From Orbicella franksi (taxonomy: Eukaryota): a stretch of 64,000 nt of DNA. The notes below the pieces were generated by a model that searched no databases, was not told where the DNA came from, and worked only from the letters and a program-made list of their open reading frames with translations. Every line of letters starts with the position of its first letter. The first letter of the stretch is position 1. The DNA lies in NCBI GenBank assembly GCA_964199315.1, contig OZ116698.1, positions 17,236,001 through 17,300,000 of the forward strand, in the 5' to 3' direction. The position numbers were made by a program, and so were the translations under genes. This document shows positions 865-53,622 of the stretch, one piece after another.

Positions 865-3800
865 ATGGCTTCTTCTATAGATGTCAATAAGGGGGAGATT
901 AAAAAGAGTGCAAAGTATAAGTGGCAACTTGGTCATTGTTTAGGGAAGGGAACATGCAGTGTGGTTGTTGAAGCTGTAGGCACATTCTACTCCAGAAGCA
1001 TATGCAGACATTCTCCTCCACGAGTTCTGAAAGGAGCTGTCAAGACTTTCAAACAAGGACATCAATTTGAGCAAGCTGCAACTAATGAAATAGAAATTCT
1101 AGAGTATTTGAATCGTCAACAGGAATCTCCCTATAAACACTATATAGGTGAGTTACAAGTATGGTATGAACTCAAGTTAATAATAAAACCCCAAGTTCTG
1201 AAAGGGAGGTATTTATTGGACAGGTGTGGACAAATTTCTCTGTTCACACAACCAATTTCCTCAGTCCCCAGAAATTCCTTACTGATTATGCTCTACTATG
1301 GAGAGATACATGTGGTACTCTTATGGGTTGTTGTTGGGCTTAGACTTCTTCTGGTAGAAATGAGAGAAAAAACTTATGTGATGCATGACACTTATGATGA
1401 AAATGACAAGAAGGCTGAAAATGCTCCATCAAGTGTCAAATAGTGTGGGTACAAGAGTCGTTTTGGGCTTTGCCCTAATTGAAGAGCCTTTTCAGTTGTC
1501 ATTTCTTTTTGTTTTTTCTATAATATGAATCCATCAAAGACACTACGTGGTGGGGCTGTACTGTTAAAGGAGAAACACCCACAAGTGTGCAAGTGCTAAG
1601 ATCGCAGTTGCTCTTTTTTCTTTCTGTGAAATAAAGAGAATTGAGTGTGACATCATTGCTGCTACATTTACAATTGGCATTTGGTCCATAAAAAAAATAC
1701 TTTTTATACTTTGAGTTAACAACTACAGAGTAAACAAAAATCTTAGTGTGGGCTTGCTACTCTACCAACTGTCACAAGATTCAACCAAAGTATTTTTTTC
1801 AACAATTATGTGTTAAAATTATCAATAATACTATGTCTTTCCTTCTGTAGTGCACTTGCAGGATTACTTCTTATGTAAAGACCAATTGCATTTGGTTTAT
1901 GAGAAGCTGGATTGCAATCTTCATCATATCTTATTAAAGAACTCAGGGAAAGGTCTTCCTTTGTCTATCATTAAGCGATGCTCTTGGGATATTGTGAGAG
2001 CTCTGAGTTTTTTGGCCACCAACAGGGTTGTTCATGGGGACCTCAAGATGTCCAACATAATGTGGAATTCAAATAGAGGCATGTTTCAACTTGTGGATTT
2101 TGGCCTCAGTTTTTTGGAGGAAAAACAAGTAAGCTGTTCAAGCAGAAAGTTTACTTTTACATGTGGGTGCTATTGAATGCAGATGTCTGTTAAAGTGGCT
2201 TTTCTTCAGGCAGTTTCACGAGCCTTTGGTTTAGGTGAGGGATTAAAAAAAGGCAGTGAATACATGATGGTATAATGATCATGTGGCATATTACACCTCA
2301 AGGTATTCCCTCAAGGTACACTCTTTCCATGCAATGATTTTCATAAAGTTCAAATCTTTTTTTGTGGCAGTGAATTTTAAAACTGAAAAATTGCCATCTG
2401 GTGACCACTTTTAAAATATGTGATGGAAATCAATGGGGTGTGAAACAGCATACAAAAAACACCATAACAGGCATCTGAGATCAATAAAAAATATTAACAT
2501 GGTGGCCTTTTGATTGCATGTAGGTTGTTGAATGCTGGCTGAGCAGATATTTAGCATTAAATTTGGTAAGGCTCCACCCTCGCAGTGCCTCTATCCATCC
2601 AGTGGTGTAAACACTCTACGTACATGTATATAAATGCATTATTACCTCAATTCAAATTTATAGAGTAGCATCTGTAGTATTGCTGCTACTATAGATCTGC
2701 AAATGATAGAGAAATGAAAACAAAAAGAAGATGGGTAGAAGCAAATTGTTGAGACAGATTGACAAACTGCCACCGGGTATTGAGCCTCCAGTGGAATACA
2801 TTGTCGGTAGTAGCCCATAATTCAGAGTCTTAAAGCAATTCTGAAATTCAAAGTTGAACTTCTGTCAATCAGTGCAAAGTTTCACCAATGTAAGAAAAAT
2901 ATGATCAGTGTCTTACTGTGCAAAGGACTGTCAATCAATTTTTAATTTGCATTTTATTCCTCAGCCTCATCAGCCACTTCAGAGTCCTGGTTACCAATCC
3001 CCAGAAGCACAAGCATGGAACAGATTAGTTGCTGAAGGTATCACTCACAGAAAGAGCTCAGTGAGTGATATTTAGGGTTTATCATGCTTCTTTCAATCTT
3101 TTGGTAGTTGAATAAACTTAGTGCCAAAATTCAGGGCATATGGTGTTTACTCAGAATATTTTGAGCACAGAGCTCAATCTTCACCGGCCTGATGGAATGG
3201 CAGTTAGTGGTGCTCACATGACTACATCATCTTCAGGTCAGGGTATCTGATCATGTGAGAACAGTCTGACATTATACACTGACATATCATAGCTTCAACT
3301 CTTCATCCATGACAGTTCAATAATGGGCTCTAGTCTTATTTCCCTGTTGTTGGCATGAAACTGAACTTCACTGGTGCCGTGAGAGTTAAGTTTCTTTCCA
3401 GGTCTCAGCGCTGACCAGTCAATCTGGAGTCCAGTGCCCTATCTATTGGGCCATCATACACCTGTTTCTCCCAAGTATGTGCACTTGAATATCCAGATTT
3501 CTGACTTCATTCTTGCAGAGATGCTCTTTTGCCAGTGACATGTGGAGTTTTTCTTATGTACTGTGGTACATGTACACAGGAATGCCAGCACCCAGATGTC
3601 TAACAGATGAGCCAACATGTGTCATGTGTTTGCAGGAAGAGGTAATGAATATTTTCTCAATGGCCAGTTCCTTCTATGAGACACTCTTGCAGGGAATCAG
3701 GGTAGTTGTGTTCACCAAAACAATATACAGTCGAAGATTTTGAACACAACTACCATGATTTCCTGCAGGCATTTCTCATAGAGGGAATTGGCCATTTGAT

Positions 3801-6800
3801 GATGATTATTATCATGTGCAATATTCTACATCCACCATTAAGTGAAATATTCTCAAAAGTCATGAGGGTCAATGTATTTCTAAAGACAGTGCTTGCTTCT
3901 TACAACATATTTTGGACAACAGACAGATTCTTATTTATTCATATATAATTACTCATATGTTGGAGTTGCCATGACACCTGTTCATAACTAGTGTACATTT
4001 ACCCACTCCCCTCAACAAAAATAAATCAGGGAGAGGAGAGTCACTCTCCCCAATACTGTCGCAAGGAGTTGGTAGATATACACAGATATGTGCATGTTAT
4101 CATCGGAGATTAAACTACAGCACATCCAGGCTATTCAAATCTACAGCCTTTTGACACATGTCTCTTCCTTGATTATTATTTTTTTTTACACAGAATTATA
4201 CATGCTGTGGTATGAAGAATGGAGCAACAAGCATTTGCCGTTGTTTCAAGGTGTTAATTTTGTGTCATTGTTATAACTGAAAAACTTGTTTGTTGCTAAG
4301 CTTTGCAGATAGTCATAATTATGCAGCCATGCTGATGACTTCATTTTAGATGCACTTCTCATCGATGCCATAGTTGATGGAGCATTGCCAAATCGGTTGA
4401 CATGCTGACTAGCTGCTATTACTACTGACGTGTATATCCGGTTAATAGTATAAAGTGAAATTGAATGTGAGAATAATATGATGGAATAATTGTTACACTG
4501 CTAGTTGATACCTTTTCTGTTTGGGTAATTGTAAACACCATAATTTGGTTATGTCTTCTAACATTAACTGGCTAGTTGTTTCAAATGTTTGTCATACAGG
4601 ATGCTAACTGCTTGCATTTCAAGCAGATCAAGCAGGAATTGCCTGATGATGATAGAGAGATCACACCTGAACAACATGAGTTATTTCTTGACTTCATCAT
4701 GAGGTAACTTCAATCAACTGTAAACTGTTATGATGTGGGCTTTTTGCATTAAGTTGTACATACATGTATGTAATTGACTTTGTTTTAGCCCCATATATGG
4801 TGTATATATCGAGAATTACCCCAGAAAGCAGATGCATGTCTCCCTTTCATGGCCTTGCACTGTGTTGCCTGTGAGAGAAGTCTGACCAACAAACCAGGAT
4901 ATTCTGTCTTTGTAATGAATTAATTAATGGCAACTGTTCAGATCAGCAGCACATATTCTGTGAAAAGTTACCATTTTTACCACTGTAAACAGTTGTAGTT
5001 TTTGTATAGTAATAAAAATAGTCCTATTGAAGGGGGGGGGGGGGGGGCGGGGACGCAAATTTAAATTTTAAGTTTAGTGTAAGTTTAGGGAAGATAATGT
5101 TTAAATTGCTGTATTTTATTTTTATGGTGTTCTAGTAGTAAACTGCTATTTTCGTCTTGACACTCAAATAAAGTTATTGTAATATTATTATCTAACCTAG
5201 ATCTGGTGTGTATAGTGTTGTGTTTAAAAGGACCATCTCTTCTGTTGAGATCTTGTCTAAGGTGGCTGCATTGGGACCACCATGACAATGATTGTGTTAG
5301 TAGGACCCTGAGAGATGTGATGGCAGTGTAAGAGCTTATGAGTCACATAGTATCTTGTTGGTCTTGCCAAGATACAGATCAGGTGTTGAGCTTTGTGGCT
5401 ACTACTCCAACAAGCAAAACAAAAACCAGACAGTGACAGTAATGACAATATGATGATTCATTGTATTAACTCTTTGGGACTGTTGTAACCTACCCACAGG
5501 AAAAATATTTATTTGAAAGTGATTATAATTTATTCTGTCTTTCCAGAATGATGAAGTGCCGACCAGAGCAGAGGATAACACCATTTAATGCCATGCAACA
5601 TGCATTCTTGAACAGTAAGAATAACCTTCTTATTGTCAAGCTCTAAGCATCAATTTCCATACTGATTGCTAATGTTGGCACGTTACTCAGGTGATGGTTT
5701 TCTGTATTGTCAACGCCTGTCTATTTGCATTTGAAAAGACTCCCCGTATTAGCCTCAGTTGCAAGCTATTTCCAGTCCAATACCGAGAATACGAAATGAT
5801 CTATTATATGACAAGAAGAATGGTCGCTTATTGTCTTGACATGCAGTAAAGAGGAGATTAAAACTGATCACTCAGACACCTTTTGGTGATGGCTGACTGT
5901 GTATAAACGGGTTACTAATGCTTGAAAAATTTGTTTCCTTTGTCTTACATTTCTAGGTTCCCCCTGGTGCACTCCTCATAGTTTAGAAGAGTTTTTACTG
6001 CTTCCAACCAGAATCCTTCAGCTAACTAACATCCATCTGGATGACCTCTCCTCAGACTCAAGCTTTGGTATTTACATTTTCTTTTTTTTGCTCACTTTTC
6101 ATTTTATTTAGTTTTTATCTCATTTATCTCATTAGATATTAAATTTATTCCATGGTGCAGTTATCTGTAGAAGTTATAACAGCCTTACAAGCAAGTGGAG
6201 TTGTGGTGGCCTAATGGTTAGCGAGCTGGACTCTGGATCAAGTGGTACTGGTTCAAGTCCTGGTCAAGGTCATTGTGTTGTGTTCTTAGGCAAGACACTC
6301 TACTCTCACAGTGCCTCTCTCCGTCTGGGTGTATAAATGAGTATCTGTGAATTTAGTGCTGGGGGTACCCCTACAATGGACTAGCATTCCATCCAAGGGG
6401 GAGTAAAAATATTCCTAGTCACTTCATGCTACAGAAGTTAGTATAGGGTCGGCTAAACAGGCCACTTGGTTTGACGCAGACTTTGCCTTAAAAGTAAATT
6501 TACAAACGAATTACATGTGGAATATTTCATTAGCTCTTTTTTTTTCTCTGTGCAGATGGGTTGATGGATGTACAGGAGGAGTGTGCTAAGTTTGGGGTTG
6601 TCAGAGGTTTCAAGTATGATGGTGATTCAACTGTAGGATATAAGGTAAATTGGCAAGTTGTTCATGGCAGCAGCACTTTAAGCCGGGACATGTGGTCTGC
6701 TAATGTTTCTCCCAGTTTCCATAACATGAGGCGGCTAGGAGTATTAATAGTCCCGATAAATGAAATGAAGGTCCAACACATGTTGACCGTGACCAGCATT

Positions 6801-7287
6801 TGGTCAGGCTTCCTTAACTATAACTCATTTGTACTTCAGGGTGGAGAGAGAGATAGAGGCAGTGTTATCGTAAAGTGTCTCTCCCACGTGAGAACACCCG
6901 TGGTTTGTAGAGTGTTTTTTGGCACGATTTCAAAGTAAATGATGATTTAGGTTCCTTGTCATCAACATTTCTTGGAAAGGGTTGGCAAGGAAACGAATGT
7001 GAGCCAGTTTGCTGAATTTCTTAGTGGCGCAGAATTGTAAACATCGTAGCGGTTTCATTGCTTGGGTTTGCAGTTATGCACACGACTTGTGTTCATAATA
7101 TGTACGGCCTGTGTTATGAGTTTCTTATTGCACTTCTCTGGTTTTTCAGGTATATGTTGAGTTCTCTGACGCTGACGATTGCTCGCGGGCCCACAGTTCC
7201 CTAACTGGGCGTGAATATAATGGCAGGACAGTCATTACCAGCTTTTATCCCATTGATTATTACTATACAGACTACTTCTGGCACTGA
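865..7287 (+). CDS. UHMK1: Serine/threonine kinase Kist / U2AF homology motif kinase 1 (kinase + C-terminal UHM/RRM), 9 coding exons, ~429 aa
   Basis: Exons 865-1147, 1851-2128, 2965-3060, 3519-3641, 4600-4703, 5547-5614, 5957-6067, 6556-6644, 7150-7287; all GT-AG, phase-compatible, total 1290 nt. Motifs GKGTCS (Gly loop), AVK, HGDLKMSN, DFGLSF, GYQSPE, DMWS, then LLLPTRILQLTN, DVQEECAKFG, VYVEF, LTGREYNGRTVITSFYP, matching the remembered human KIS UHM (MLPTPVLRLLN, DVKEECQKYG, VFVEY, LTGRMFDGKFVVATFYP). AATAAA at 7389-7394. Confidence 0.93.
3181..3457 (-). mobile_element. Degraded tRNA-derived SINE (UHMK1 intron 3)
   Basis: Minus strand begins TGGCCCAATAGATAGGGCACTGGACTCCAG (A-box-like tRNA head), followed by AACTTAACTCTCACGG resembling the other SINE copies. 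Confidence 0.5.
6197..6490 (+). mobile_element. tRNA-derived SINE (UHMK1 intron 7)
   Basis: A box TGGCCTAATGGTTAG, B box GGTTCAAGTCC; body GGCAAGACACT..GGTGTATAAATG..TGCTGGGGGT..ATGGACTAGCAT shared with 26169 and partly with 49327. Confidence 0.85.
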
Positions 7288-7793
7288 TATCCGTTACGAG
7301 GGATGAACTGAACACTTTCAACTGTGATTTCTTCAAGGGACGCTATGTCATACACAGTATGTTGTGATTTTACCTGGCTTACCTGTAAAATAAAGAGTAC
7401 TGTTCAGATAAAACTTGCTATCTCCCTTTAGTTATATTTTATAAATCGATAAAAAACTGCCAAGCAGCTGAAAAAGGTAGCATTTCCAAAATGGTGCTTT
7501 TTATTGGCATAAATAATTTATACGCCCCTAACCTCAAGGGGGTTATTTTACCCCCTTTCAGCTCTCTGGGAAATATATTATCCCGGCCTTTTTTTCCTCA
7601 CAGATCTATCCACTTTCCCCTCTCTTAGCTATATTTTAAAACAGCCTTGGTGCCTCCCGTGGTGGTGTATTCCCCTTTTCCTTCTGCTGGGAGATTAATT
7701 CTCCCTCTATCTGCCACACCACATCGTACAGGGTTTCTTTCAGGTGCTTACGCAGACGCTATTTGGGCTCGTCACGCAATCTTCCGAAGAGCG

Positions 7794-8885
7794 TTAGCTT
7801 CTTCCAGGCGTTCAGTAATGCATCAGTCAATTCCAGCAGTGCCCATCCCCCCCCCCCGGGCAACCGCGGGGCATTTGCTCAAGTTGTCAGTCCCGGGGCT
7901 GGAGCATCCGCAATTTTATCGTGGCCCGGGGGCTGGGCATTTGCGTACCCCGGGGCGACCCCCGGGAATTCGACACACCTGTTTTGGAAAGTGCCATGGA
8001 TGAGTTCATCGGGAAAGACGAGGCGTTTGTCGAACAATGGCTTGTCCGTCAGGGACTAGAGAAACTTGTTTTTAAAGTTATGTTTTCTCAATTTTAGATA
8101 TTTCTTCATTACTTGTAAGCATATAAATATAAGCGACAAGGTGAACTATATTTTGTTTATCACAAAACAATAACTGACGTGAACACGACTATTTCGCATT
8201 TCGCATTCAAAACTAGCCTAGCATTTTTTGAATTCATGAAAGTGGAGTTAAAATACTTAAGGTTTGCGAATTCAAATGATGCGATCTTGAAGACAGATCT
8301 TGCGAGCTTAAAATGCAATGCATCGTCATTTAAAATGTCTTGATTCTTCACAGAAAAAGTAGCCTCCGAATACAGGCGCCTATCATCGCTCGCGGCTGGG
8401 GGCACGCCCGCCGCAATCCCAGCTATCCTCTAGCAAACTGTTAAAAACAAATATAAAGAAATAAATATAATCAGAATCAACTAAGACGTACTGTTGTCCT
8501 TGAAGTCTTACCGTTGTATTAAAATACTGAACAGTTGACCGTTTTATTCACTGATTAATTTACAAACTGCGGATGTGTTGGAAGGCGACGATCCCGGGGG
8601 CGGGGCATTTGCCCTCTTTCTTCGTCCCCACCCTGGGGCATTTAGACAGCTTATGTTTCCCCATCCCGGGGAATTTGCCCATTTTTTTAAAAAAATGCTC
8701 ATGCCCGGGGGTTAGCCCGGGGGGGATGGGCACTGCTGGAATTGACTGATGCATAAGTTGGGAGCAGCGCGAAAAAACGGCGGAGCGTAGGAGAGGAGAA
8801 AAAGGCTTGGGTTCGCTTCTCCCCCATTTTTCGTGTGCCATTTTCGCGCTGTGTCCCAACTAACTGAACGCTTGGAAGAGGCTAA
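7794..8885. mobile_element. Palindromic short element split by the 7819-8753 insertion
   Basis: Left arm TTAGCTTCTTCCAGGCGTTCAGT|AAGTTGGGAGCAGCGCGAAAA versus right arm reverse complement TTAGCCTCTTCCAAGCGTTCAGTTAGTTGGGACACAGCGCGAAAA. Confidence 0.75.
7819..8753. mobile_element. Non-autonomous PIF/Harbinger-like element, 935 bp, TAA target-site duplication
   Basis: 35-bp perfect TIR TGCATCAGTCAATTCCAGCAGTGCCCATCCCCCCC at both ends; TAA at 7816-7818 and 8754-8756; no transposase ORF. Confidence 0.85.
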
Positions 8886-9262
8886 AAGAGTGTCTGCTTA
8901 GGAGGCCATACCGATATCTACTCAATATCAACTTATCAAATAATTTATATTTTGTTGTTTTCTATGTTTCGTCGGCCGCTATCGTTAAATAGTCCTGTAG
9001 TCTTGTATGACGGAATTCGTTAGTATTCTGTACAACCGTCAGTCGGCCAGGATTGATCTGCGGATACCAATTGTTATCGTTTCAAGTGTTGATTATCTTT
9101 CCTCTGGATTATAGTTAAAAGCATCAGACTTTAGGGGGACGTTAAAAATGCGTGCGATTTTATTTGGATGCGACCCAGGCTTGTCGTGTTCCGTGCGTTA
9201 ATGTTTAAATTAGGTGAAAGTTCGATGCACGCAATCAAGGGTAATGCTTACAATGGTAACTG

Positions 9263-9698
9263 CCGGTTTCGCCCCATGGCGAGTTCGCCCCCACCGAGTT
9301 CGCCCCCACATCAACTCAACTTGATCGAGTTCGCCCCAACCAGATCGAGTCGTATATAGAGATTATTCCTCGTTCTTTTATCCACTGCCTTATTAGATTA
9401 CTGGTGGCGAGGAAACTTCGCTTGGTGGCGAGGTGACTTTGCTTGGCGAGTTCGTTGGTGGCGAGATAACCGGTAACTGTTTGACTTTGTTGCTATGCGC
9501 GCGCCGGCTGCAACAAGTGAACAATCATCATCTAAGCTTATCAAACATACATAGGCTGAAATGGTTCTTCGAAAACGTTTAATAACTCGATAACAACTAC
9601 GTAAACACGAACACTAAAAGTTGGGGGCGAACTCGAAATGGAAATTTTATAGTGGGGGCGAACTAGGTGAGGGCGAACTCGCCATGGGGCGAAACCGG
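9263..9698. mobile_element. MITE with subterminal GTTCGCCCC / GGTGGCGAG repeats
   Basis: 28-bp TIR CCGGTTTCGCCCCATGGCGAGTTCGCCC at 9263-9290 and 9671-9698. Confidence 0.75.
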
Positions 9699-11489
9699 TA
9701 TCATTCCTTACAATCAACTGAAGCTTAGATACATCCGAGACCGGCTCATTGCAAAACAAATGCTAATACTTTTCCTCGTTTTAATGACCAAGTGGTTCTG
9801 TTTAATTATTTCAACAAACTAATTTTCCCTAGACAATCCGACTGTGGACGAAATATATCACTGGCTTACCTCAGCAACCAAGGTATTTAGGACGTTTCTG
9901 TGGAGAACGAGTCTTTACCAGTAGTTTAGACACATGATAGCTTTTCCAAGCACATTTGAAGTCACTTGCTGGTCTTTTTGTTGGTCAGATTGCAATTTTC
10001 CGTTTCTTTTGTACGTTTGCGTGTATTTCAATCTTTAACAAATTGAGTGTGGATATTTGTGAACAATCAATTAGGTGGCTTATTTTACCGAGGCGTTAAT
10101 TGCCGAAAGAGATCACGTTGGGAAGCTAGGATACAAGAAATGGCCTCATATTCTATACAATTTGAATCACGTACCGGCTTTTTTCTAGATAGAGCACAGT
10201 TTTTCCAGCAGTTTAAGACAAGTTCACTCAGATAAAAAGAAATCAAGTGTGCGGATTTTTGTTCAGTTAAAAGACTTTTTAAATAGGTGTTAATTGTTCA
10301 AGAGCTTGTGTTTACCTTCCGGCGTGACTTCTGAGCTGAAAGACGGATAGCCTATTGAATCTCAAGGGTGGCAATTTAACATAGATTCTTTTAACTTTCA
10401 ATGTATTGGACTATTGTGTTTCAAGCAAATTTTCGTTCAATAGTCTGATCAGTAGAAAATGTAAACGTTGCTTAAATTAATGACCTAAACTTTTCAGCTT
10501 TCGCGGGCATCATGTGTAGAATCTTTACAACTGACCGAGAGAAAAGCGACGTCCAGCCTACAGCCTTAATTTAATTTAACTTTTTTTAAAAGACGAACAC
10601 TCGTAATTTAGCTTTTTTCGTCTAAAAGTCTTTGCACATTTTATGTACGTTTTTTTTACCGTGATATTCGCGAAAAATTGAACATTATTTTGGTAAAAAA
10701 TCTTGTGATTACCAGGATAACCTTTCATTTTCTGTTTGTGGAGAAAACAAATCACATGTTTCTCTTCGACTGTTAAATTAAAAAGATGACACTTGCACAA
10801 TATTTTGATGTTTGTGAATTTTAATGAACGCTTTGATTGATGATCTTCACGTTCACAATGGAGTCTAAAGAAACTGTGTGTAAACTGCCAAGATAACGCG
10901 AGACGGTCAATATTTACTTAGACCAAAAAAAACGAACTACTTTGTAGTTTATACCAAAATGTATTTCGCAACTTTTCATACACGCAATTTAACGTCTTGC
11001 CTTGACAGACGACTTGGGTCGCAATGACTAAACTGACACGACGATGACAACTAGCGGTTTCCCTTGGACTGTGGACTCTGTACATGACGCGACCGTCTCA
11101 CATATTAAAAATAGTTGAAAAATGCTGTTCCGTTTTATCGCCAGCCAAATGAGATATTCATTATAGTAATAAAAGTTAAAAATAAAATTAATGATCTTGC
11201 AGAAGATCTTTTCCCGAGCTCTCTTTGAAAAACTAGTAAGAATACATTTACCTTGGACAAAGTTTGCGCAAAGCCGGCGAGGAATATCAGCCGTGAAAAT
11301 AAACTCGAAGAGATCCGTGGCATTCAGGCTTAACATTACTGCGTTTGGAGAGCACGAAAAGGTTTGATCAAATCTACAACGGCTATCAGTTTGCCTTGTC
11401 TGTGAACGTTTATAAATCAATTTGTACGAGACACTGCAGCTGGATCTGCAGAAGTTTCCGAGCAGAAGTTGCAACCTCGCGCTGCCCAC

Positions 11490-12728
11490 CTATCCTTTTT
11501 TGCTAAATATTTCGTCGATTCCTAATTCTCTCTCGGGGTCGTCCATGTCCACCTCTTGTAGAGGCTTCTTGGGTCTGCGAAGGTACCTGGCTTTCTTTGC
11601 CTCTTGCAGGAGATCAGTCAAAGGTGGTAAGAGGTATACAGTTCTAGGTAGGCCGTCTGGGGGAACATGGAGGTACGGTGTTATATCAGGGTCGTCATCC
11701 TCATCATCCATCAATTGATTCGTGCTTGCGGGTTGTGAGAGTCTATTTTGAATCCTGTCTTTGACAGCGTCGAGATTAACCTGTGCAAGCGAAGTATCTA
11801 GTTTGGGAGCGGCCTGCGAGACCGGGCGAAATCGTTCGGTTTCTCCGTTTGTATTTGTGACAGAAACGTTTACAGTACCTCTATCGGTGGATTGTCTAGG
11901 GTTTTGTCCGGCCGGCGACACATCAAGGCTAAACTTTCCGCGTGATTGCCTTCTCTGTTTTTCCTTGGGCTTTGACGAAGTAATCGTGGTGAATGAGTCT
12001 TGGGTAGCGTCCTCCTCTACCCGTGAAATGTCAGTCCGAGACGTGAGTTGCGGGAGAGTGCTGCTCATGGAGGGTAGCGTTGGTAACGACAAACTTTTTC
12101 GTCGCGAAGGGTCATTCGATATCGTCTGCGTCTCGCTGTTCGAAGCTGTGNNNNNNNNNNNNNNNNNNNNNNNNNNNNNNNNNNNNNNNNNNNNNNNNNN
12201 NNNNNNNNNNNNNNNNNNNNNNNNNNNNNNNNNNNNNNNNNNNNNNNNNNNNNNNNNNNNNNNNNNNNNNNNNNNNNNNNNNNNNNNNNNNNNNNNNNNN
12301 NNNNNNNNNNNNNNNNNNNNNNNNNNNNNNNNNNNNNNNNNNNNNNNNNNTCGAAGCTGTGAGCGCATTTCCAGCTAAACCTAAGCCGTTGTAGTTATCA
12401 CTATTTTTTAAAGACGCAACTCTTTTGGACTTTTTCTTCTTGTTGAGTCAGCGCCTGCTTTGCCCGGCATTGTTCGCTCTGTTATTGTTTCGCTGTTTTC
12501 TAAGGTGCCCGACGTTTGCGTGATCTCTCTCAACTCGTGCTTAAGGCGACGCATCTCGTAGTTAAGCGAGTGCAGATTAGTGGATTGGTGTCCATCAATG
12601 CTGCCCTTTCGGAGCCTCAAGCGATTGCCCGCTCTCTTGTTAAGGTTACGAGCTTTGCTCGCGTTATGGTCGAGCTGTTGTGCGGATAACACGATATTGT
12701 TGTTCCGTCGTGGTGTTCTCTCTCCCAT
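11490..12728 (-). CDS. CCDC190: CCDC190 (C1orf110/DUF4697)-like coiled-coil protein, single exon, ~342 aa after repairing the gap and a 1-nt frame break
   Basis: N-terminal RNLNKRAGNRL...LNYEMRRLKHELREI aligns without gaps to remembered human RKNAKQAEARL...LTWEQRQLQKELQRL. C-terminal PPLTDLLQEAKKARYLRR...ERELGIDEIF matches PTFLELLSKARNAHYLRH...ERLLSIGEIF. First in-frame ATG 12728, TAG 11492-11490. Needs the flanks of the gap (12151-12350) merged and +1 nt added within 12411-12447. Confidence 0.78.
12151..12350. other. Assembly gap (200 N placeholder); flanks overlap by 11 bp
   Basis: TCGAAGCTGTG at 12140-12150 and again at 12351-12361. Merging gives the continuous frame ...GNALTASNSET... Confidence 0.9.
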
Positions 12729-13816
12729 AGTGATTCGATTCAGTACACCAAGCAGCAGTTTGTCTCCTGACGTCTTTTTCTCTGCGTTGTTAACCAACGA
12801 AACAAAGCGATAGACATTTTGACAAGCCGTCGAAAATCACTGTCGCGTTGAGCGGAATCGTTTGCATTACAATTCGCTTAGTCGATACATTCGGTTTGTG
12901 CGAGAAGTATGCCAGATATCCAAGTTATTAGCATAAGACACTTGAACGTCACACACTCTGTTTAAAAACAATACACGATGTTACGTTTTGTGATCAGAGA
13001 TGGCAAACCACTAAGAATGGAATTCTTTTTCTCCGCAAAGGGCGGTTTTCTTTTGTGACAGGGTCACTCGGAAACAAGTTCCTTTTGACTGTTTTGACGC
13101 CCAAGGCGATTACAAACAAAATTATTAAATTCGCATCAAGGACTTTGTATCGCTCTATGCCCATGAAGGCCATTGATAATTATACGGTTCAAATGTTAGG
13201 CCGATTATTGCCTTATTAATTCCAGCTGTGATTTGATCAATCTCCTACGCTCTTTTGTTTGGAAATTCTTGCCTCCCAAATTGTGTGTCAGGGCATCGAG
13301 GTTAGCGTTTTACGTCATCGAGTTGGCGGGTTTCAAGAGTTTTCAATGAGAAGTGGAGAGAGATCAACGACGGTTTTTCTTTTTTCGTCATCTTTTGTTT
13401 GTTTCAGCTGGAAATATGACTACTCTTGACTGGGGGCCATTTATTCTGCTTTATGGGATTTAGTTTATCCTAATTACACGCCAAATACCGTTTGTTATAT
13501 TTTCAATCTTTCCCACGAGTACCGAAGACCTCTTAGCACACTTTTCAACTTGCTGAGTCAATGAAGTAAGCACGAATCCTTTTTAAAGCGAGCTTACATG
13601 AGTTACTTTATTATTATGCCTATGAGTTATTCACCGTGTAGTTCAGAACTGAGCACAAGTGTCGTTTACTAAGCTATGAGTAATTCTTAGCAACATTGGA
13701 TGGGACACTTAACTTCGGAAATTCATACCAAACAAGCATTTTTTCCGCTTCTGACTGCCGGACATTTTGAGTGTTTTTCTTTTCCGTTTTAAAAGTAAAG
13801 TGGCATTGAAACCATG

Positions 13817-13991
13817 CAGCGCATCTAGTTGGACCCCGCTAATTCGAACTCGGTTTTTTTGAATTCTCCGTTTTATTCGAACTCATACCTTTTCCCTTTG
13901 GATTTGCTTTAATATGTCATTTACTATCGACTATTTCGAACTACAAGTTTTCGTTTCCCCTGAGATTTCGAAATAGCGGGGGTGAACTGTA
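13817..13991. mobile_element. Tc1/mariner-pogo-like MITE
   Basis: ...TGGACCCCGCTAATTCGAAC ... TTCGAAATAGCGGGGGTGAACTGTA; ACTG-TA right end, degenerate left end. Confidence 0.6.
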
Positions 13992-15733
13992 CTTTTAAAA
14001 TAGTCAAAATGCCTTTTGTTACTAATTGGCCAGAAGCATATTTAGATTTAAAAGAGCTCAGCAATAGACTGCTTAATTCAGACCGTTTTCATTGTTGTCA
14101 TGCAAACGAATGTTGACGGCAAAGACATTTTATCTAGTCTGGACGAGTGCGATTATAATATAATGATGTCTTCTATAGTTGCCGTTTAAAATAGAATGAT
14201 TCAAAGACGTACGTTTTACGTCAAAATGACGTCATAACACATAAACTGTTGGCAAACTGATGAAATCGTGTCTTATGATCCCAAAAGTTACTTTTAGAAT
14301 ATAAATTGGCCAAGAAGAGTGCATTTTGAACAATTCCAAGTAAATTTATAAAAAAGGCATTGTTTTTTTGACAGTTTGACGTGTGTCGTGACTGCTTTGG
14401 CAGAAATATACCTCATTGAGTGTTATTTTAATAGAAAAAAGCTTAAAACCGAATTTCCTCTAAAATAGAAAGTAGAAGATGACGCCATGACGGACGATTA
14501 CAACCAATTATGAACAGTCCGTTTAGTAAGCAGCAAATGCACAGTGCTCGGACAAAGTTTGGGCGAAGTTATCCCTGAGTTACCTAATTTGAAATCATCA
14601 CCCCCGGTGACAAAACACTCCTGAATTGACACACAATTTTCCACATTGGAAAGGGGGAAAGCTGGGAGTGTTGACAAGTTTTTACTAGTTGCTATGATCG
14701 TAATTTGAAACATTTGCAAGTGTTTCAACTAAATTCGCGTGCTTCTTGATGGCTCTATCTAGCCTCTCAGATTATCAGTTTGCTAATAGTCGAGTCAGCC
14801 AGTGGTCATGCTAAGCAGTGTATTGTGTCGTCTAACTTAATGGCCGCCTTTCTGGGTTGAATAGAGCTTTTACGACGATCCCTTTGCCTATTTTTTTGCG
14901 GAAGAGACTGAGAGTCTGATAGCAGATTGTTATAGGTTATGGCTTTGAAAGAACTTACGCGAGGCTTATCCCCATACTGTACTATATACTCCTCCCAGTA
15001 GACCACCACGCCCGCGAATTTTTTTTTCCGCTTTCAGAGTATCGTTTTATGTCGCTTGTTTGGTTTAAACCAATCAGTTTGTTTTAGATATATCACGTGA
15101 TTGGTTTGAAAAAGGCTCGTGACATCAAAAAAAGTACACTGAAGGCGGCAAATCGTGGTTGTCGCGGTCTAATGGGAAGGGTAGTAACACTTTTCAAAAT
15201 CTCTGAATCATTTCTTCCAATGAAAGTTAAAGACGTCTTGTTGTTAGCACGTAGTTGTAGATCTAAGAGCGTGACGTGGGGTGAAAATAAAACGCCCGAG
15301 GGGTTGAAAAAGTTTCATTCCTTCTCCCTATTGAACTCAAAAAATGTCAGGTCTTAACTCTCGCATAGCCCTCCCTCCCTCTCATAATGTTCCTCGCAAG
15401 AAGGGGAAAGTGTAAAAGACTAGTCTCCGTACGGGATGATCTTCGAAACTCCTTTGTTCAGGTTTTGGACCCATTGTAGGCTCTTGCAAGTATGTCCCCA
15501 GAAAGGCCCTGGCGAAAAGGATCCATTACAAGCAGAGCTCCTGATTACAAGGAATTTCGACGAATCGACCAAACACTCGTTTTGGAACAGACTGAAAACG
15601 CAATTTTTTCGGCCACTTCAGCTAACAGCATGGGCCAAGTCTTGGTGTTCCACTGAACAAACCCCTTTATCGTGCATCCTGATTGACTAACTTGTAGGAA
15701 AATTTGTTAACTGGCCACAGGCTAAGCTAAGGC

Positions 15734-15843
15734 TAGGCTCGATTTCCAGCCGTTTAGTGAGCCCGCGTTCCTTGCCCCGCACCACTCCTCGTTGGGAGGA
15801 GGATAAATAACTGCACTCCCAAAACGGCTGGAAATCGAGCCTA
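15734..15843. mobile_element. 110-bp palindromic MITE
   Basis: Perfect 22-bp inverted ends TAGGCTCGATTTCCAGCCGTTT / AAACGGCTGGAAATCGAGCCTA. Confidence 0.8.
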
Positions 15844-16356
15844 CGTTAAGGCGCGCTGCACTGTAAATTGTACTGTGCGACTGAAATTACATGTTTGTTA
15901 AGAGGAGTTTGATCAAGTTAAAAAAGTGAAGTGCTTAGAAATATGTTCAGGGTTCTCGGTAAAATGCGTTGTTTCACGTGGTGCCACTCACAAATGCGCG
16001 ACTATCGAATTATAAACTTCAGTGTTTTTGTGGCGGGCAATGCAACGTTTTCAAATTTTTTGATCAAAATCTCACATTTGACAGAGAACGAAGACAGAAT
16101 CTTGCTGGCGATCGATCTTTTGCCGAGTAGAGAAATGACGACGAAAGAGAATTTTTTTAAGTCAATGACTTTTATTTCCACGGTAGCACACAGTAAGAAG
16201 TAACACCTAACAGCTCTAACTGATCACATCGTTAATTACTGATCCTTTAAAAGGGTTTTCATAAATGACATATCTTGAAAATTGTTGTAATAATCAATTA
16301 TTGTCCGCAGCGTCAGCACAAGTAGCTTCATAAAAGTGGATTCTCAACTAATGATT

Positions 16357-17090
16357 ACCACTCAATAGCTAGCTTATACAATGATAATGGCTCCTCAAAA
16401 GTTTGAGGGAAAGATATAAGCTACTCAATAGCTCAATACAATGATATTAGTTTCCTAATCACTTGTGCAATGATAACAGCTACTCAATAGCTTACACCAC
16501 ATTGGATTAGTGGACAATGACACTGATGATCAATGATCGATAGGTAATAATTGAATAGCTACTCAATAGCTTAGTACACATTGAATATCGTCAGTGATGT
16601 TATCAATAGCTTAATACTGAAACAATTTAATAGCTACTCAATAGCTTAGTAAACTAATGATAATTAAAAAAATAGCTGAAATAAAATAGCTACAATAATT
16701 AATAAAAATAATTACCTATAATTTAATAGCTACTCAATAGCTTAGTAAACTATAATAATAGTAATAAAAAAAAATAGCTGAAATAAATTAGCTACAATAA
16801 TGAAAATAATTACCAATAATTGAATAGCTACTCAATAGCTTAGGATATCGTCAGTGATTTAATCAATATCTTAATACTGAAACAATTAAACAGCTACTCA
16901 ATAGCTTAGTACTCATTGGATATCTTAGTGATTTAATCGATAGCTTAATATTAAAACAATTAAACAGCTACTCAATAGCTTAGTACACTTTGGATCTCGT
17001 CAGTGATGTAATCAATAGCTTAATACTGAAACAATTAAACAACTACTCAATAGCTTGAAAGTATGGAAATTACAATAGCTCGTCAATAGC
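16357..17090. repeat. Compound AT-rich minisatellite, core (A)GCTACTCAATAGCTTA
   Basis: Ten copies of CTCAATAGCT spaced ~59-97 bp. Two recurring unit types of ~75 bp and ~97 bp with homologous inter-core sequence. Confidence 0.9.
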
Positions 17091-17196
17091 GTGATTTAGA
17101 AATAACAGTTTCAAATTGTTTAACACGGAAAATGTAATCAAAGGCACAATGGCGAATTCTGAAACCTATTGGTTCGCGTCCGGCGTCTCAGCCGTT

Positions 17197-20100
17197 TCAC
17201 ACCTGCACCTCCATTTCGGTTTGCTTGTTTCTTTCCTTGTACCACTTCAGAAGGAGTATTAACAAGATCGTCATCACACCAAGGGCAAAGGAAGCAGTCG
17301 ATGCAAACGTGATGTGAAGGAAGTTCAGGCACACTGTGAAAGAAAGGTAAAGAAAGATAAGCCAGGCTGCCTTATGTTAAGCCAGACTGGCTTATGCTAA
17401 CAAGACATGGGTTGAAGTTCAGTTCTACAAAAGCAAAGGATCAAGGTAAGGCAAAGCCTACGTTTGAGCTTAGTGGCCCATCAGCCCGGCGCTGATCTCC
17501 TGTTTCCCTAGCATTTAAGCTAGTTGGAGTATTTCTACTTTCCACCCCACCTACAGCCTTGGTCACAAGGGTCGGAAAAATTCATTCTTTGCGCATTTTG
17601 CCCCTCCCCATCTAACACAAGTTTGCATTTTACCATTTTCCAACATTGAAAAGGGGAATGAGGCTGCTTACACTTATTCTGTAGGTATTACCGTTAGAGT
17701 AGTATTCATTTGAGTGTCGAAAAGTAATGGGTTTTACATCAACTACGTTACATTATTTGCTTGAAAAACTCGCGCCACTTTTCCATCCAATCAGACGTAA
17801 AACCAAAACCAATTATGACTCGCTCGCACACGTCTTCCCGCGCTTTGCGTCAGCTACATGTAATCACTTTGAGTCTTGATTGGTTCACTGTATTTGTGTG
17901 TTCCCTTTGTGATTGGCTAGAGTGATTATTATTCTGCTACCGAGGAAATGTAACTATATCCAACGAGTTCCGCGTATGATTCCAATGAACGGATATTTGA
18001 GATATTAGCGAAGAGTCTGATGTATGTCAGTGCCTGGGAGTGTTTGCATTTACCTTGATTACTGTCTTTATTTGAGAGTGCTGCAGCTTCTTGCTCTGTG
18101 CGTTCGGATGGCTTTGCTAAAAATGGAATTAAAGTTGCGCTAGATTAGAACTACAATCACACTGTACCACTTTGATCTTTCCGTCTGGATGATGTTGCAC
18201 TGACGCCTAAAACGTTCTCCGTTTCGTGGCTTTTGCTATAAATTGACCGATACCCATAACTTTTGTTTTAAATTGATGTTTCAGAATTTTTGATGCCAGT
18301 ATAAGTTTCAATTAAGGACAAAACAACCAAAATTATTAGGGGCTGAGAGCGCGGGACTGTTGTTTCTCTTACAAAACTCTACAGATATCAACTATTAGTA
18401 TCACCCAACTAGTGGACTAATGCAAATCCTGCATTTTAATTGGCTACGCTACTGGAGGACTATTAGTAATAGTCCTCGGGTAGCGAAATTGGCGAAATGG
18501 AGCGCGACGCTTTCTTTCGCATTATTCCCAAATAAATATTTTTTTCAAGTTGCATTTGCTAACTTTATTATTGCCTTTTCTGTCCGACTAGTTGGGTGAT
18601 ACTAAAACAATTAAACCTTTCGCCCTCAAGGGCCACGGGTCAATATTGACCCGTAGCCCTTGCGGGCTACGGGTCTAATTGTTAATTATCCTGATATAAA
18701 TTTATTAAAGGAAGCGTATCATGTGGTTCAAAACTTTTTTTGGCGAAAAAAGGTTGCATGGAGGAACGGGGCAAAAACGGGGGAAGGACTAGGGAGGGTA
18801 AGGGGGCTGGAAAATATATTTCAGTTTTATGACTTCTATCAACTCCATCAATGCCATCCTGTGGTCCATTATCAGAATGGCCTCCCTGAACAGCCAAACC
18901 CGTTCTGATTTAATACATCCTATCTTACTAGTTTATCGCGTGTATTACCTTTTCTCTCCAGGTTCTTTCGATCCCGCTTAAAACCCACTGGCCACACCAC
19001 AAAGGGACCAGCTGTGATGTCAGTTTCCTCTTGGTATGGGCAGTGCTGTGCTTGTGTTCTGCAGTTGAACACATCTGGATAGGGCAGCTCCTTTCTTCGA
19101 CAAGTTGTCATTGTGCAATGCAGATAAAGGAACTGCTCGAACAGCCCAAAATATTGTCTTAGGTTGAACTTGAATCTTATGGCGACGGCGTCGCCCACGT
19201 GGGTGGGAAGATAGTTGCTTTCAAGGGTGACCGGGCAGCTGAAAAATTCACGAAGGGCAAAATTACCTGATGTATTTATGCACCTGAAAACAGGCCGCAA
19301 ACAATCGCTCCTTGTCTAATCAAAAAAAAAAAAATCTATTTTTATTTGGCTTTTAATCCACATTCATTCGTCCAAATTGAATAAGAGTGCCTGGACTGGA
19401 GCAAGGGGATTGGAGACGAGGCCTAGATGGGGCTCCCCCTCTCAGTCCAGTTTTCCTTCGTTACTCAGAGCGGGAACTTTATTTACAATAAATAAGTGAA
19501 GATAAGTAGGTAAAGTCCTTGTCAGTCCTATTGTAAATGATGAAAGGAGGTGAGTCATCGATGCTGGCGCCCGTTTACTTTGCATTCTTTTGCATGAAGC
19601 GACTTAGCATATAGCTATTCCCTGAAGGAGATTTTGTGTCATCGCAGGTCACTTCCTCAATCCCATTCCCAAAAATGCTTCGGTAACCATATTTATTTGG
19701 GTGGGGAGAGGCACTGTGAGGGTAATGTGCTGTTCAAGAGCACCACACGAGGTCTCAGACCGGGATTTAAATAAGGACCTATCTATCTGCGATCCAACGG
19801 ACCGAAACAATTAAATCATCGCGTAAGATGGGACGTGGGGCAACGCCCTGTATCGCTAGTGAGTGGCTTCACTTACTAACTGTTGATCAATAGAAACGCC
19901 AGCGACGGGCCGTGATCTGTGCAGTTCTTGTACGGACTGATATGACACTCCTTGGGAACGACTACTCGGTCATTGTCGGTAGCTGAAACAAGTTTAATAA
20001 AACCACTATTGAAACACCACAGTCACGGTAAAGTTATCAAAAGATATGAAAATAAACCAGCAGATTATATCTTGATCATAGAGGGGATGAATTTGAAAGC

Positions 20101-22479: not shown

Positions 22480-22625
22480 CAGTGGCGGATCTAGGGGAGG
22501 GGCGCAGCCCCCCCCCCCTTATTTTGGGTAAAAAAAGAAGAAATGACAGAAGGAAGAAAAGCCGGCGGGGGCAAGTGAAACAAAACCGGGCACCCCCCTT
22601 AGCTCAAAGTCTGGATCCGGCACTG
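22480..22625. mobile_element. CAG...CTG-ended MITE with 5-bp TSD (hAT5-like)
   Basis: CAGTGGCGGATC ... GGATCCGGCACTG; CAAAT at 22475-22479 and 22626-22630. Confidence 0.7.
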
Positions 22626-22724
22626 CAAATATATACAAAAATTAAAATGGAAAAACAAGTGTCAATAAACTAATTGTTCTTTTTGAAAAGAATAGAGTAC
22701 TGATTGGAGAGCGGTCTTGAATTG

Positions 22725-24470: not shown

Positions 24471-24529
<59 letters not shown>

Positions 24530-51800: not shown

Positions 51801-53622
51801 AGCCCGAATTCTTTGTTTTTTTCCGCAGAAAATAAAACTTCTTCAAGCAAAAATAATCGAACTAAAGAAGGCGTTCCAACGAGAACTGGTAAGATTATGT
51901 GTTCACGTGATTCCGTTACTTAGGGAACTTTATCACTACCTGACTTCTTTTCTCTGCTAGTTAATCCTTTACAGGGACTGAGCCAACCTAAAACATAATT
52001 AGGCAAAAAACACACAAAATAATCGGTAAAAGGGTTGTAAAAAATGTTCTTGTCGTTTATTTTGTTGCAAACGTTCTTCGAATACTTTTTCTTCTCAGAA
52101 AATGGCCGCGCCTGGGGGAGAGGCTATGCAGAGAAGTCCTGGCACCCCAAACGGTGACGTCATTGAACACAGTGATGATGAGAAAGACAGACAGGAATAT
52201 CTCGAAGTTAACTTTAAGTATCCTTTGATGCTGGACACTAAAGACACAGTGTCCCGGCTGATTATCGAAAAATGACTTCCTTAATTTCCAGCGACCTCCC
52301 CGCCATGTTGTGTAACCAAGATGTATTAATTTAACTTACAGTATCACCTTAACTCATCCTTTGATGCTTGACAGTAAAGAGACAAGTGTCCCGACTGATG
52401 ATCGAAAAATCTCTTTTCTAATTTCCAACAACCTCCCTGCCATAGCTATGAAAACCAGATATATTAATTTAACTTACAGTATAACCTTAACTCAAAGTCA
52501 GATATTTAAAACATGTGGTATTAAAATACATGTGCAGTACGAACAAGCAGGTAATGTTGTAGTCGTTCAGTATTCTCCCTCTCTGTTTTATTTAACAGCT
52601 GGTTTGTTTTTAGCTCGTGCTTTATGATTACGTCTGTTCACACTTGGTTGGTTCATTTGACTTTGGATCCAGAGGTTGGCATCCAATCCCTGGCCAAAGG
52701 GATTGTGGGGTGTTGTTGGACAAGACTTTTTTAAATGACTCTCCCCATGCCTCTGTGTTCTGAAATATTGTTTGCATGACTCTTATTTTGGTATGAAAGG
52801 GGAAATAGAAAAGGCGTAGTCATATTATGCTTGTGTTAAGGTAAAAGGCGTGGGAATGAGCTCTCCTAACCTTGCGCGAGTGTTTCTCTCAATGTTTAGG
52901 AGCACGAAAAAAAAGTTTTCTTGAAGAAAGTAACTTGCAGGAAATTTTGTGACAACGCGGCTTTATGCCATTCCGAGCTTGCGCTTTCTCCAGGCTGTTT
53001 TCTAAATGTTATTTGTAATGTTTAAGTTTATAATATGTTGTGTTGTGTTTGTCTTGTTAGTCTCGCCAGTTGATCAACGTGATCGGCCATTTGTTAAGGT
53101 TCACACCCAAAGAGAGCGCATGCGTCAAGGAAGCTATGGAGTGGAAGGTTTGTGCCAACTTTTTTTTGTTGAGAAGTTCATGATCTCCACACTGACTAAG
53201 TAAATTCCCGAATGCTTTTTCTGTTGTTATTATTGTAACTGTCAATCTCCATGGTTCACTTTCCTTCGTGTTGAAATCTTACCTCCGTATTGAAATCTTA
53301 CCTCCGTATAATGTTACCTCCGTACAATTTGAATTTAAATAGTGTCGGTCCATCGTTGGAGCAGACATCATTTCTAGTTGTAGGTAATTCTTGAAGACAA
53401 AGAAAAGAATTGGTTAAACTGAATTTGGTATACTCTAAGTTGACATACAAAGACAAAAGGCTTATTACAGCCAGACGGCTTTGGGGTGACGAGCGTGTAA
53501 TTGGTGGAAGAGGACTTACTGGTCGGTGAAACTTTGATGTGTAAAACTGTAAATGTGTAAACTGTGATGTGTAAAACTAATGGTCTTAATATTTTTTATC
53601 GTTTCAGTTGCCACTTGATTAG
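27890..53622 (+). CDS. GOLGA1: Golgin subfamily A member 1 (golgin-97), coiled-coil + C-terminal GRIP domain, 31 coding exons, ~828 aa
   Basis: Exons 27890-28180, 30323-30410, 31241-31315, 32084-32181, 34069-34101, 34700-34774, 37261-37320, 38972-39060, 39410-39521, 40080-40175, 40275-40348, 40650-40704, 40821-40916, 41292-41387, 41529-41624, 41837-41893, 42892-42987, 43561-43650, 44186-44251, 44886-44966, 45116-45153, 46863-46935, 48190-48256, 49170-49240, 49557-49580, 49900-49959, 51829-51888, 52099-52217, 52502-52550, 53061-53147, 53608-53622; total 2487 nt, open. MFAKLKQKIAEE N-terminus; SSKEEILDLLAKKGEQVNRLEAKI (cf. human [24 protein letters not shown]); LQQQELTKMK; GRIP EVNFKYLKHVVLKYM...LINVIGHLLRFTPKE. 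Confidence 0.92.
31515..31930. mobile_element. PIF/Harbinger-like MITE, TTA TSD
   Basis: AGCCTGGTTTTCATAT ... ATATGAGAACCAGGCT; TTA at 31512-31514 and 31931-31933. Confidence 0.8.
33289..33916. mobile_element. Non-autonomous piggyBac-like element
   Basis: TTAA|CCCATTGAC ... GTCAATGGG|TTAA; TTAA TSD and CCC/GGG termini are diagnostic; no transposase. Confidence 0.85.
39541..39726. mobile_element. CAG...CTG-ended MITE with 5-bp TSD (hAT5-like)
   Basis: CAGGGGCGTTGCTAGG ... CCTTAGCTACGCCCCTG; GGATT at 39536-39540 and 39727-39731. Confidence 0.75.
45335..45372. repeat. Perfect 18-bp-arm palindrome with 2-nt loop
   Basis: CAGAAGCATATCACCTAG-AA-CTAGGTGATATGCTTCTG. Confidence 0.9.
45976..46345. 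mobile_element. PIF/Harbinger-like MITE, AAT TSD
   Basis: AGGGAGCTTAAGAAA(A)CCACGA ... TCGTGGTTTCTTAAGCTCCCT; AAT on both flanks. Confidence 0.75.
47796..48076 (+). mobile_element. MITE (AGAGCGGTTTTCA family)
   Basis: AGAGCGGTTTTC ... GAAAACCGCCCT inverted ends; second copy at 17695-17930. Confidence 0.7.
49327..49480 (+). mobile_element. 5' half of the tRNA-derived SINE
   Basis: TGGCTTAATGGTTAG A box, GGTTCGAGCCC B box, CAAGACACTTTA..GGTGTATAAATGG. Confidence 0.75.
51298..51715. mobile_element. Harbinger-like MITE with internal AAAACG repeats
   Basis: CCGATCACACTAATGCGTT ... AACCCATTAGTGTGGTCGG inverted ends. Confidence 0.6.
52221..52494. repeat. Two diverged ~137-bp tandem copies forming most of GOLGA1 intron 28
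   Basis: TCCTTTGATGCT..GTGTCCCG..ATCGAAAAAT..ATTAATTTAACTTACAGTAT.ACCTTAACTCA occurs twice. Confidence 0.85.

Follow-up and report, generated by a model that had tools for sequence, protein, structure and literature searches.

The window analysed here is a 64,000-nucleotide stretch (C1:17,236,001-17,300,000) of the 497-Mb genome of the coral Orbicella franksi, in which C1 measures 44.7 Mb (9% of the genome). Within about 53 kb it contains the orthologues of UHMK1 and CCDC190 together with a golgin that fits GOLGA1. Two sea anemones have the same three genes as direct neighbours with unchanged relative orientation, and in the coral the trio is flanked by EXOSC2 and PRDM12 at one end and by SET and PBX at the other. 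On balance we consider it probable that a block of genes characteristic of Hexacorallia lies here inside an older neighbourhood, and that this neighbourhood is the unduplicated counterpart of human 1q23.3 and 9q33.3-q34, which were later sorted by reciprocal loss. One compact cnidarian locus would then account for the content of two human sister regions, and could help to reconstruct the chordate genome as it was before duplication and to date the gene losses that came afterwards.

Identity of the three genes

A preliminary description of this DNA had placed UHMK1, CCDC190 and GOLGA1 within about 53 kb, with the first two tail to tail, and exon mapping and domain content bear this out. The coding features of UHMK1 are as follows.

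865-7284, plus strand: UHMK1 (KIS/Kist) orthologue, ten coding exons
865-1155, 1847-2128, 2941-3060, 3519-3650 and 4191-4250, plus strand: first five UHMK1 coding exons (approximate, from coral orthologue mapping)
4597-4704, 5545-5622, 5959-6069, 6558-6647 and 7144-7284, plus strand: last five UHMK1 coding exons (approximate, from coral orthologue mapping)
7282-7284, plus strand: UHMK1 stop codon

The ten exons are colinear with the orthologues of other corals at 78-97% identity. Exon 2 matches the Pfam family Pkinase (1.1e-16), which is also present in full-length coral UHMK1 orthologues, and the last exon, aligned to the chain end, has its best match in the UHM of U2AF65 (3.4e-6), followed by the UHMs of PUF60, SPF45 and U2AF35. 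A kinase joined to a C-terminal UHM is the architecture of UHMK1/KIS. The Actinia orthologue shows Pkinase and a weak RRM_1 match, and those of Porites and Oculina carry the NCBI name 'serine/threonine-protein kinase Kist-like'. All ten exons occur once in the coral genome, at one locus, the other matches being generic kinases of at most 37% identity. Judged by its predicted domain architecture and by the NCBI name of its relatives, the gene at 865-7284 can be taken as a true single-copy UHMK1 orthologue.

11490-12797, minus strand: CCDC190 orthologue, single exon, stop codon at 11490-11492
12728 and 12797, minus strand: conserved start codon of CCDC190, and the longer start of P0001 (a protein of 365 residues from transcript or contig assemblies)

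In the CCDC190 protein an N-terminal coiled coil and a disordered middle are followed by a strongly conserved C-terminal motif some 60 residues long (window 11490-11700). RNA contigs of 1.8-1.9 kb from three studies have no splice junction in the part that aligns to the window, 12351-12921. Being invisible to Pfam, this gene was the weakest link in the preliminary description, and the call has turned out to be correct. Neither the Pfam model CC190 (PF15768) nor any other family above cut-off was matched in the window exons or in ten cnidarian proteins, and the CC190 match is only 'weak' in amphioxus and 'faint' in abalone; the model appears to be too narrow and to miss the cnidarian members.

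The identification came from a cnidarian profile of 16 sequences, searched against 1.84 billion representative proteins. It found 91 proteins, including NCBI-named CCDC190 of Narcine (3e-13), Callorhinchus (4e-12), Latimeria (6e-10) and several frogs, and these named vertebrate proteins aligned to the profile at full length, in single stretches covering both proteins. Pfam CC190 was carried by 51 of 62 further matches. On the N-terminal coiled coil, comparison of the cnidarian profile with a vertebrate one by hhalign gave 99% probability (E 4.6e-18). Common to all matches from cnidarians to vertebrates is the C-terminal motif PDG-x-x-RT ... EA-x-KARY-x-R ... EL-x-I-x-EIF. Homologues are also present in amphioxus, Ptychodera, a crinoid, a sea cucumber and abalones. 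In a phylogenetic tree the cnidarian-type and bilaterian sequences separate at 100/99 support, and Ambulacraria, chordates and vertebrates are recovered, with long branches remaining. There is one locus in the coral genome. On this profile, tree and genome evidence the minus-strand gene is a single-copy orthologue of CCDC190 whose tree follows the species tree. CCDC190, uncharacterised in vertebrates, is an ancient single-copy gene of animals.

The UniRef name of the Pocillopora orthologue, 'Shugoshin C-terminal domain-containing protein', has no Pfam support and was treated as a mis-annotation. CCDC190 is a single-exon gene in this coral, Nematostella, Actinia, Ptychodera, the crinoid and abalone; its span is 4.6 kb in amphioxus and 3.4 kb in the elephant shark, with a protein about as long, which points to introns gained in chordates.

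27890 to at least 53183, plus strand: GOLGA1 (golgin-97-type GRIP golgin), many short coiled-coil exons, exon 1 at 27890
52501-52548 (first half) and 53062-53147 (second half), plus strand: intron-split GRIP domain (Pfam GRIP; borders read directly)

Exon 1 of the golgin and at least ten further exons are colinear with GRIP proteins of Nematostella (821 amino acids, aa) and Actinia (828 aa), both of which match Pfam GRIP. In the coral the domain falls on two consecutive exons, GRIP positions 3-24 matching at 6.8e-5 and positions 24-41 at 3.1e-4; an exon at about 52.2 kb also takes part in the split. A splice donor stands directly after 53147, and a short last exon probably lies further downstream, up to about 53.5 kb. 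A whole-genome Pfam GRIP search returned other loci on C6 and C7 and missed the gene in the window because an intron splits its GRIP domain. Exon 1 is unique in the coral genome and defines a single locus; its comparison with PDB and the ESM Atlas gave nothing useful. It starts with a MFAKLK-type motif, which we take to be the N-terminal motif common to golgin-97 and golgin-245. The size of the protein and this putative motif would fit GOLGA1 and not golgin-245, GCC1 or GCC2.

The block in coral and sea anemones

In the coral UHMK1 and CCDC190 stand tail to tail with 4.2 kb between their stop codons. The trio is not contiguous, 15 kb and two ZP-C genes lying between CCDC190 and GOLGA1. In Nematostella (OW051992.1, 16.46 Mb) GOLGA1 starts at 8878 on the minus strand, CCDC190 occupies 10001-10924 on the plus strand and UHMK1, again on the minus strand, has its 3' end at 13161 (gene positions in the two anemones are coordinates within each extracted locus). 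Here the GRIP golgin of 821 aa, CCDC190 of 307 aa and the kinase of 415 aa are direct neighbours with the same relative orientation as in the coral. In Actinia tenebrosa GOLGA1 starts at 8615, CCDC190 lies at 10001-10996 and the coding exons of UHMK1 run from 17383 to 12382, followed by YEATS2 at 17795-20497 (best PDB match human YEATS2, 3e-66). The arrangement shared by the coral and the two anemones is therefore convergent for UHMK1 and CCDC190 and divergent for CCDC190 and GOLGA1. Distances in the anemones are short, with 1.1-1.4 kb between the divergent starts of CCDC190 and GOLGA1, where the ZP-C genes are absent from both species, and 1.4-2.2 kb between the convergent ends of UHMK1 and CCDC190.

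The block may extend to a fourth gene. In Actinia YEATS2 and UHMK1 are head to head, 0.4 kb apart, and in the coral a YEATS2-type gene is present 2 kb ahead of the window (C1:17,233,945-17,234,187), on the strand opposite UHMK1. The YEATS2 orthologue has an open frame of 836-901 aa and is head to head with UHMK1 in both coral and Actinia. In Actinia the 10 kb on the far side of YEATS2 contain neither PRDM12 nor EXOSC2. What looked like an inverted repeat between UHMK1 and CCDC190 in the coral proved to be a similarity of only 58 bases.

According to Zimmermann et al. (PMC10719294), little gene order survives even between two edwardsiid anemones separated for 174 million years (My), Nematostella and Scolanthus, and cnidarians seldom have blocks of three or four genes. 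Since cnidarian gene order is reported to be so scrambled, a block of three or four genes that has kept its orientation between Scleractinia and Actiniaria is unlikely to be due to chance. UHMK1, CCDC190 and GOLGA1, in our reading together with YEATS2, form a tight block whose order and orientation have been kept since stony corals and sea anemones diverged. Its persistence could be due mainly to tight packing: where divergent starts and convergent ends are so closely spaced, few breakpoints would be harmless. Such a constraint would not be absolute, because two genes have entered between CCDC190 and GOLGA1 in the coral.

The block might instead be held together by regulation, through promoters shared by CCDC190 and GOLGA1 and by YEATS2 and UHMK1, through 3' overlap of UHMK1 and CCDC190, or through enhancers of PRDM12 or PBX located in bystander genes. 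The very short distances between divergent starts in the anemones (1.1-1.4 kb and 0.4 kb) agree with this, as do the two developmental regulators, PRDM12 and PBX, that flank the region, and the overlap of the annotated Actinia UHMK1 transcript with CCDC190 on the opposite strand. In the coral, however, CCDC190 and GOLGA1 are both intact at a distance of 15 kb with two new genes between them, CCDC190 being found in RNA runs, and the stop codons of UHMK1 and CCDC190 are 4.2 kb apart. We regard regulatory constraint as an unlikely explanation. The packed divergent and convergent block offers an opportunity to test whether gene order is maintained by shared promoters in animals reported to be without long-range regulatory domains.

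As to the Actinia annotation itself, the UHMK1 range (8811-17383) covers CCDC190, which is on the other strand, completely and comes to within 200 bases of the start of GOLGA1, which suggests overlapping antisense transcripts of UHMK1 and CCDC190 in this species.

The wider neighbourhood and two human regions

Searches of the coral's own genome gave the following positions on C1.

16.795-16.800 Mb: PTPA
17.202 Mb: EXOSC2
17.2226 Mb: PRDM12 (75% identity, E 2e-44 versus 7e-24 for the next PRDM match)
17.234 Mb: YEATS2
17.237-17.289 Mb: the trio UHMK1, CCDC190 and GOLGA1
17.441 Mb: GrpE
17.446 Mb: SET (best PDB match human SET, 1.5e-22)
17.484 Mb: kinesin
17.511-17.516 Mb: the only PBC/PBX locus in the genome

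The interval from EXOSC2 to PBX, trio included, measures 314 kb, with EXOSC2 and PRDM12 on one side of the trio and SET and PBX on the other; together with PTPA these genes fall within 0.72 Mb of C1. The preliminary description had proposed that the three genes preserve the state of the human 1q23/9q33 paralogon before duplication. At the scale of the neighbourhood this stands, given EXOSC2, PRDM12, SET and PBX within 314 kb. The accompanying proposal of a three-gene micro-block shared by cnidarians and bilaterians is not supported, no adjacency having been found within 10 kb of CCDC190 in five bilaterians.

Three groupings of the orthologues in livestock presumably correspond to human 1q23.3, 9q33.3 and 9q34.12, and we take SET and PTPA to be in 9q34.11, PBX3 in 9q33.3 and PBX1 in 1q23.3. 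In the horse UHMK1, DDR2, HSD17B7, CCDC190, OLFML2B, PBX1 and LMX1A occur in one interval (PMC8532986). In sheep a 1.1-Mb interval lists, in order, HSPA5, RABEPK, PPP6C, SCAI, GOLGA1, ARPC5L, WDR38, OLFML2A, NR6A1 and NR5A1 (PMC8327097), and 5 Mb away on the same chromosome the order is ABL1, EXOSC2, PRDM12, FUBP3 and ASS1 (PMC10376747). Between EXOSC2 and PBX in the coral, seven of the ten identifiable genes that are not lineage-specific have human orthologues in two short segments of the 1q/9q paralogon.

These positions would be explained if the block lies within an older and looser neighbourhood of about 0.3-0.7 Mb, made up of PTPA, EXOSC2, PRDM12, the trio, SET and PBX, which may be older than the split between cnidarians and bilaterians. 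The neighbourhood would represent the single region that two vertebrate genome duplications made into human 1q23.3 and 9q33.3-q34. By reciprocal loss one duplicate might have retained UHMK1, CCDC190 and PBX1, and the other GOLGA1, SET, PRDM12, EXOSC2 and PBX3. The direct adjacency of the three genes need not predate Hexacorallia.

A simpler account is that all these genes belonged to one ancestral linkage group, and that their local clustering and their likeness to 1q23/9q33-34 are coincidental, helped by a choice of genes made after the fact. Nine locatable markers had been chosen beforehand from human maps. Six of them are on C1, where paralogon markers are spread over at least 15 Mb, and only two, PBX and PTPA, are less than 0.45 Mb from the trio, whereas for SET, EXOSC2 and PRDM12 the positions had been seen before the genes were recognised. 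The presence of the six preselected markers on C1 is ordinary macrosynteny. Coincidence would not, however, be expected to yield an oriented block of three to four genes shared by coral and anemones, given the reported scrambling of cnidarian gene order (PMC10719294). Nor does it sit well with the seven of ten conserved genes in two short human segments, when by our rough estimate, reasoned and not computed, fewer than one in ten random genes of the linkage group would map there. Two separate lineages, moreover, each show CCDC190 in linkage with EXOSC2 and PRDM12. Taken together, this makes chance combined with macrosynteny quite improbable, and of the readings considered here we give it the least weight.

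The preliminary description had also named UAP1/UAP1L1, OLFML2 and ARPC5/ARPC5L as supporting pairs. None of them gives support, the UAP1-like and OLF genes being on other chromosomes and ARPC5 14 Mb away. The OLF-domain genes form two tandem arrays, C3:18.16-18.27 Mb and C3:4.97-5.00 Mb, and none is near the trio; because these arrays are on C3, the OLFML2 anchor has no counterpart near the coral trio. Nuf2, the ABL F-actin-binding domain, FUBP_C and SIN1 gave no match when searched exon by exon in the coral genome. Elsewhere on C1, at 34.59-34.72 Mb, at least ten PR/SET-domain exon matches occur within 130 kb and suggest a lineage-specific expansion of a PRDM-type gene.

Absence of the trio and the age of its adjacency

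The surroundings of CCDC190 in bilaterians and in three ENA contigs were checked by annotation and by tblastn with the window exons and coral UHMK1, within 10 kb on each side of the gene. In these genomes this distance covers immediate neighbours, so that direct adjacency is excluded and looser linkage is not. The neighbour of CCDC190 is a SOUL-domain gene in amphioxus and ITPA in the crinoid. In the three ENA contigs (L002, L031 and L007) UHMK1 and GOLGA1 are absent within 10 kb of CCDC190. Two of these contigs, which are related to one another, have the order ZMAT2-like, EXOSC2, CCDC190, PRDM12 within 21 kb.

L002, 4282-21016: gene group
L031, 380-21027: gene group

In L031 an additional Kelch-repeat gene is present between EXOSC2 and CCDC190. 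The two contigs represent an anthozoan-like lineage, and their CCDC190 sequences group with those of sea anemones on a very long branch. With CCDC190, a gene of human chromosome 1, placed between EXOSC2 and PRDM12, their order is a second, independent link across the two human regions.

A number of observations weigh against a Hexacorallia block within an older, unduplicated neighbourhood. UHMK1, GOLGA1, EXOSC2 and PRDM12 are all absent within 10 kb of CCDC190 in amphioxus, Ptychodera, the crinoid Anneissia, the abalone Haliotis and the elephant shark Callorhinchus, and the lineage of L002 and L031 lacks the trio around CCDC190. The two genes inserted between CCDC190 and GOLGA1 in the coral indicate that the divergent arrangement is not indivisible. 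YEATS2, GrpE and kinesin, three of the ten genes considered, map elsewhere in human, YEATS2 presumably at 3q27, outside the paralogon. The other markers on C1 are distant (ARPC5 at 2.9 Mb, ASS1 at 9.4, SCAI at 12.2 and Torsin at 13.4), and the UAP1-like, OLF and GLE1 genes fall on different chromosomes of the coral. The mammalian groupings behind the human band positions come from livestock gene lists, and the golgin was assigned to GOLGA1 over other GRIP golgins by architecture and size, not by a tree.

The gene-order comparison called for in the preliminary description has given a divided answer, with the trio present in Nematostella and Actinia and not found within 10 kb of CCDC190 in amphioxus. 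This bears on a stricter version of the history, in which UHMK1, CCDC190 and GOLGA1 were already adjacent in the cnidarian-bilaterian ancestor and in the pre-duplication chordate, and bilaterians later loosened or split the block. Human UHMK1 and CCDC190 are, we assume, only a few genes apart, and UHMK1 with CCDC190 on chromosome 1 and GOLGA1 on chromosome 9 would each lie between an OLFML2 and a PBX gene, with which the livestock lists agree. The identical order and orientation in the coral and two anemones speak for this version, as does the co-occurrence of mammalian UHMK1 and CCDC190 in one small interval (PMC8532986). Adjacency was nevertheless found in none of the five bilaterians within 10 kb of CCDC190, and the trio is missing around CCDC190 both in the L002/L031 lineage and in L007, and we think it doubtful that the three genes were neighbours at so early a date. 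It seems to us equally improbable that the entire interval bounded by PTPA and PBX (C1 16.8-17.5 Mb) represents a near-undisturbed eumetazoan relic in which YEATS2, UHMK1, CCDC190 and GOLGA1 are in ancestral order, held by shared promoters and overlapping transcript ends. If this were true, the locus would join a small number of blocks of several unrelated genes whose history can be followed from cnidarians to the vertebrate duplications.

Relation to known systems

The neighbourhood resembles the paralogon of the major histocompatibility complex (MHC; 1q21-25 / 6p21 / 9q33-34 / 19p13) and the invertebrate proto-MHC, in that the coral has orthologues of genes of 1q23.3 and 9q33.3-q34, including the classic anchor PBX, and in that their division between two human regions fits duplication followed by reciprocal loss. 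To our knowledge, UHMK1, CCDC190, GOLGA1, EXOSC2, PRDM12 and SET are not among the usual anchors of this paralogon. The coral evidence differs also in being compact, at about 0.3 Mb, instead of a chromosome-wide linkage, and the comparison covers the 1q and 9q members.

In the conserved microsynteny described for metazoans (PMC3514665, Irimia et al. 2012; PMC8851819, Robert et al. 2022) unrelated genes likewise remain adjacent and oriented over hundreds of My, and divergent or convergent pairs with very short spacers, as in the trio, are typical of such blocks. The trio is a further example of this already known kind of conserved neighbourhood, except that its adjacency is seen within Hexacorallia only and not across phyla. 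The names of the three genes were not found in the consulted supplements of PMC8851819, and our literature search found no paper that links UHMK1, GOLGA1 or CCDC190 with synteny. Ancestral linkage groups (PMC8809688, PMC10719294) also have a parallel here, since six of nine preselected markers and all seven genes of the local cluster are on C1; macrosynteny predicts a shared chromosome with scrambled order, whereas the coral has a local cluster and an oriented block of three or four genes. As for the pair EXOSC2 and PRDM12 of human 9q34.12, the two genes are 21 kb apart in the coral and also close in L002 and L031. The difference lies in CCDC190, which is between the two in these contigs and 25 kb beyond PRDM12 in the coral.

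Assembly faults and other features of the locus

The DNA of the window is AT-rich and eukaryotic, with one run of 200 N at 12151-12350. The nearest named homologues of its genes are from stony corals (Oculina, Pocillopora, Porites) and then from sea anemones, and the public runs that contain the locus are labelled coral metagenome or stand under coded organism names. Two faults of the assembly affect CCDC190.

12151-12350: assembly gap inside the CCDC190 coding sequence, an artefact with an 11-base repeat on both edges
12425-12431, minus strand: A-run one base short, an apparent frameshift in CCDC190

Direct reading of the flanks shows identical 11 bases on either side of the gap, at 12140-12150 and 12351-12361. 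Below the gap, 219 residues of P0001 agree with the window at 100% identity; its residues 147-365 map there and its residues 1-127 and 120-149 above it, and no residues of P0001 or of the orthologues are missing across the gap. From the repeat and this mapping it follows that two contig ends overlap, that nothing is hidden by the gap and that the CCDC190 frame runs across it; the gap is an assembly artefact. At the A-run the frame switches between residues 120 and 127 of P0001. Because an extra base after 12430 is present in all four public runs compared (three RNA runs, each from a different study, and one DNA run), the frameshift is an assembly error and CCDC190 is intact in the organism.

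Two further groups of genes lie next to GOLGA1. The first, between CCDC190 and GOLGA1, consists of the two inserted genes, given here by their open reading frames (ORFs).

18923-19315 and 22918-23412, minus strand: two ZP-C-type genes, weak ZP-C match

On the other side, the interval between GOLGA1 and the GrpE and SET genes is occupied by a tandem array, about 150 kb long, of intronless rhodopsin-type G protein-coupled receptor genes on both strands. The array runs from 57492-63871 of the window on to about 17.44 Mb of C1 and includes at least two dozen ORFs of 300-340 aa.

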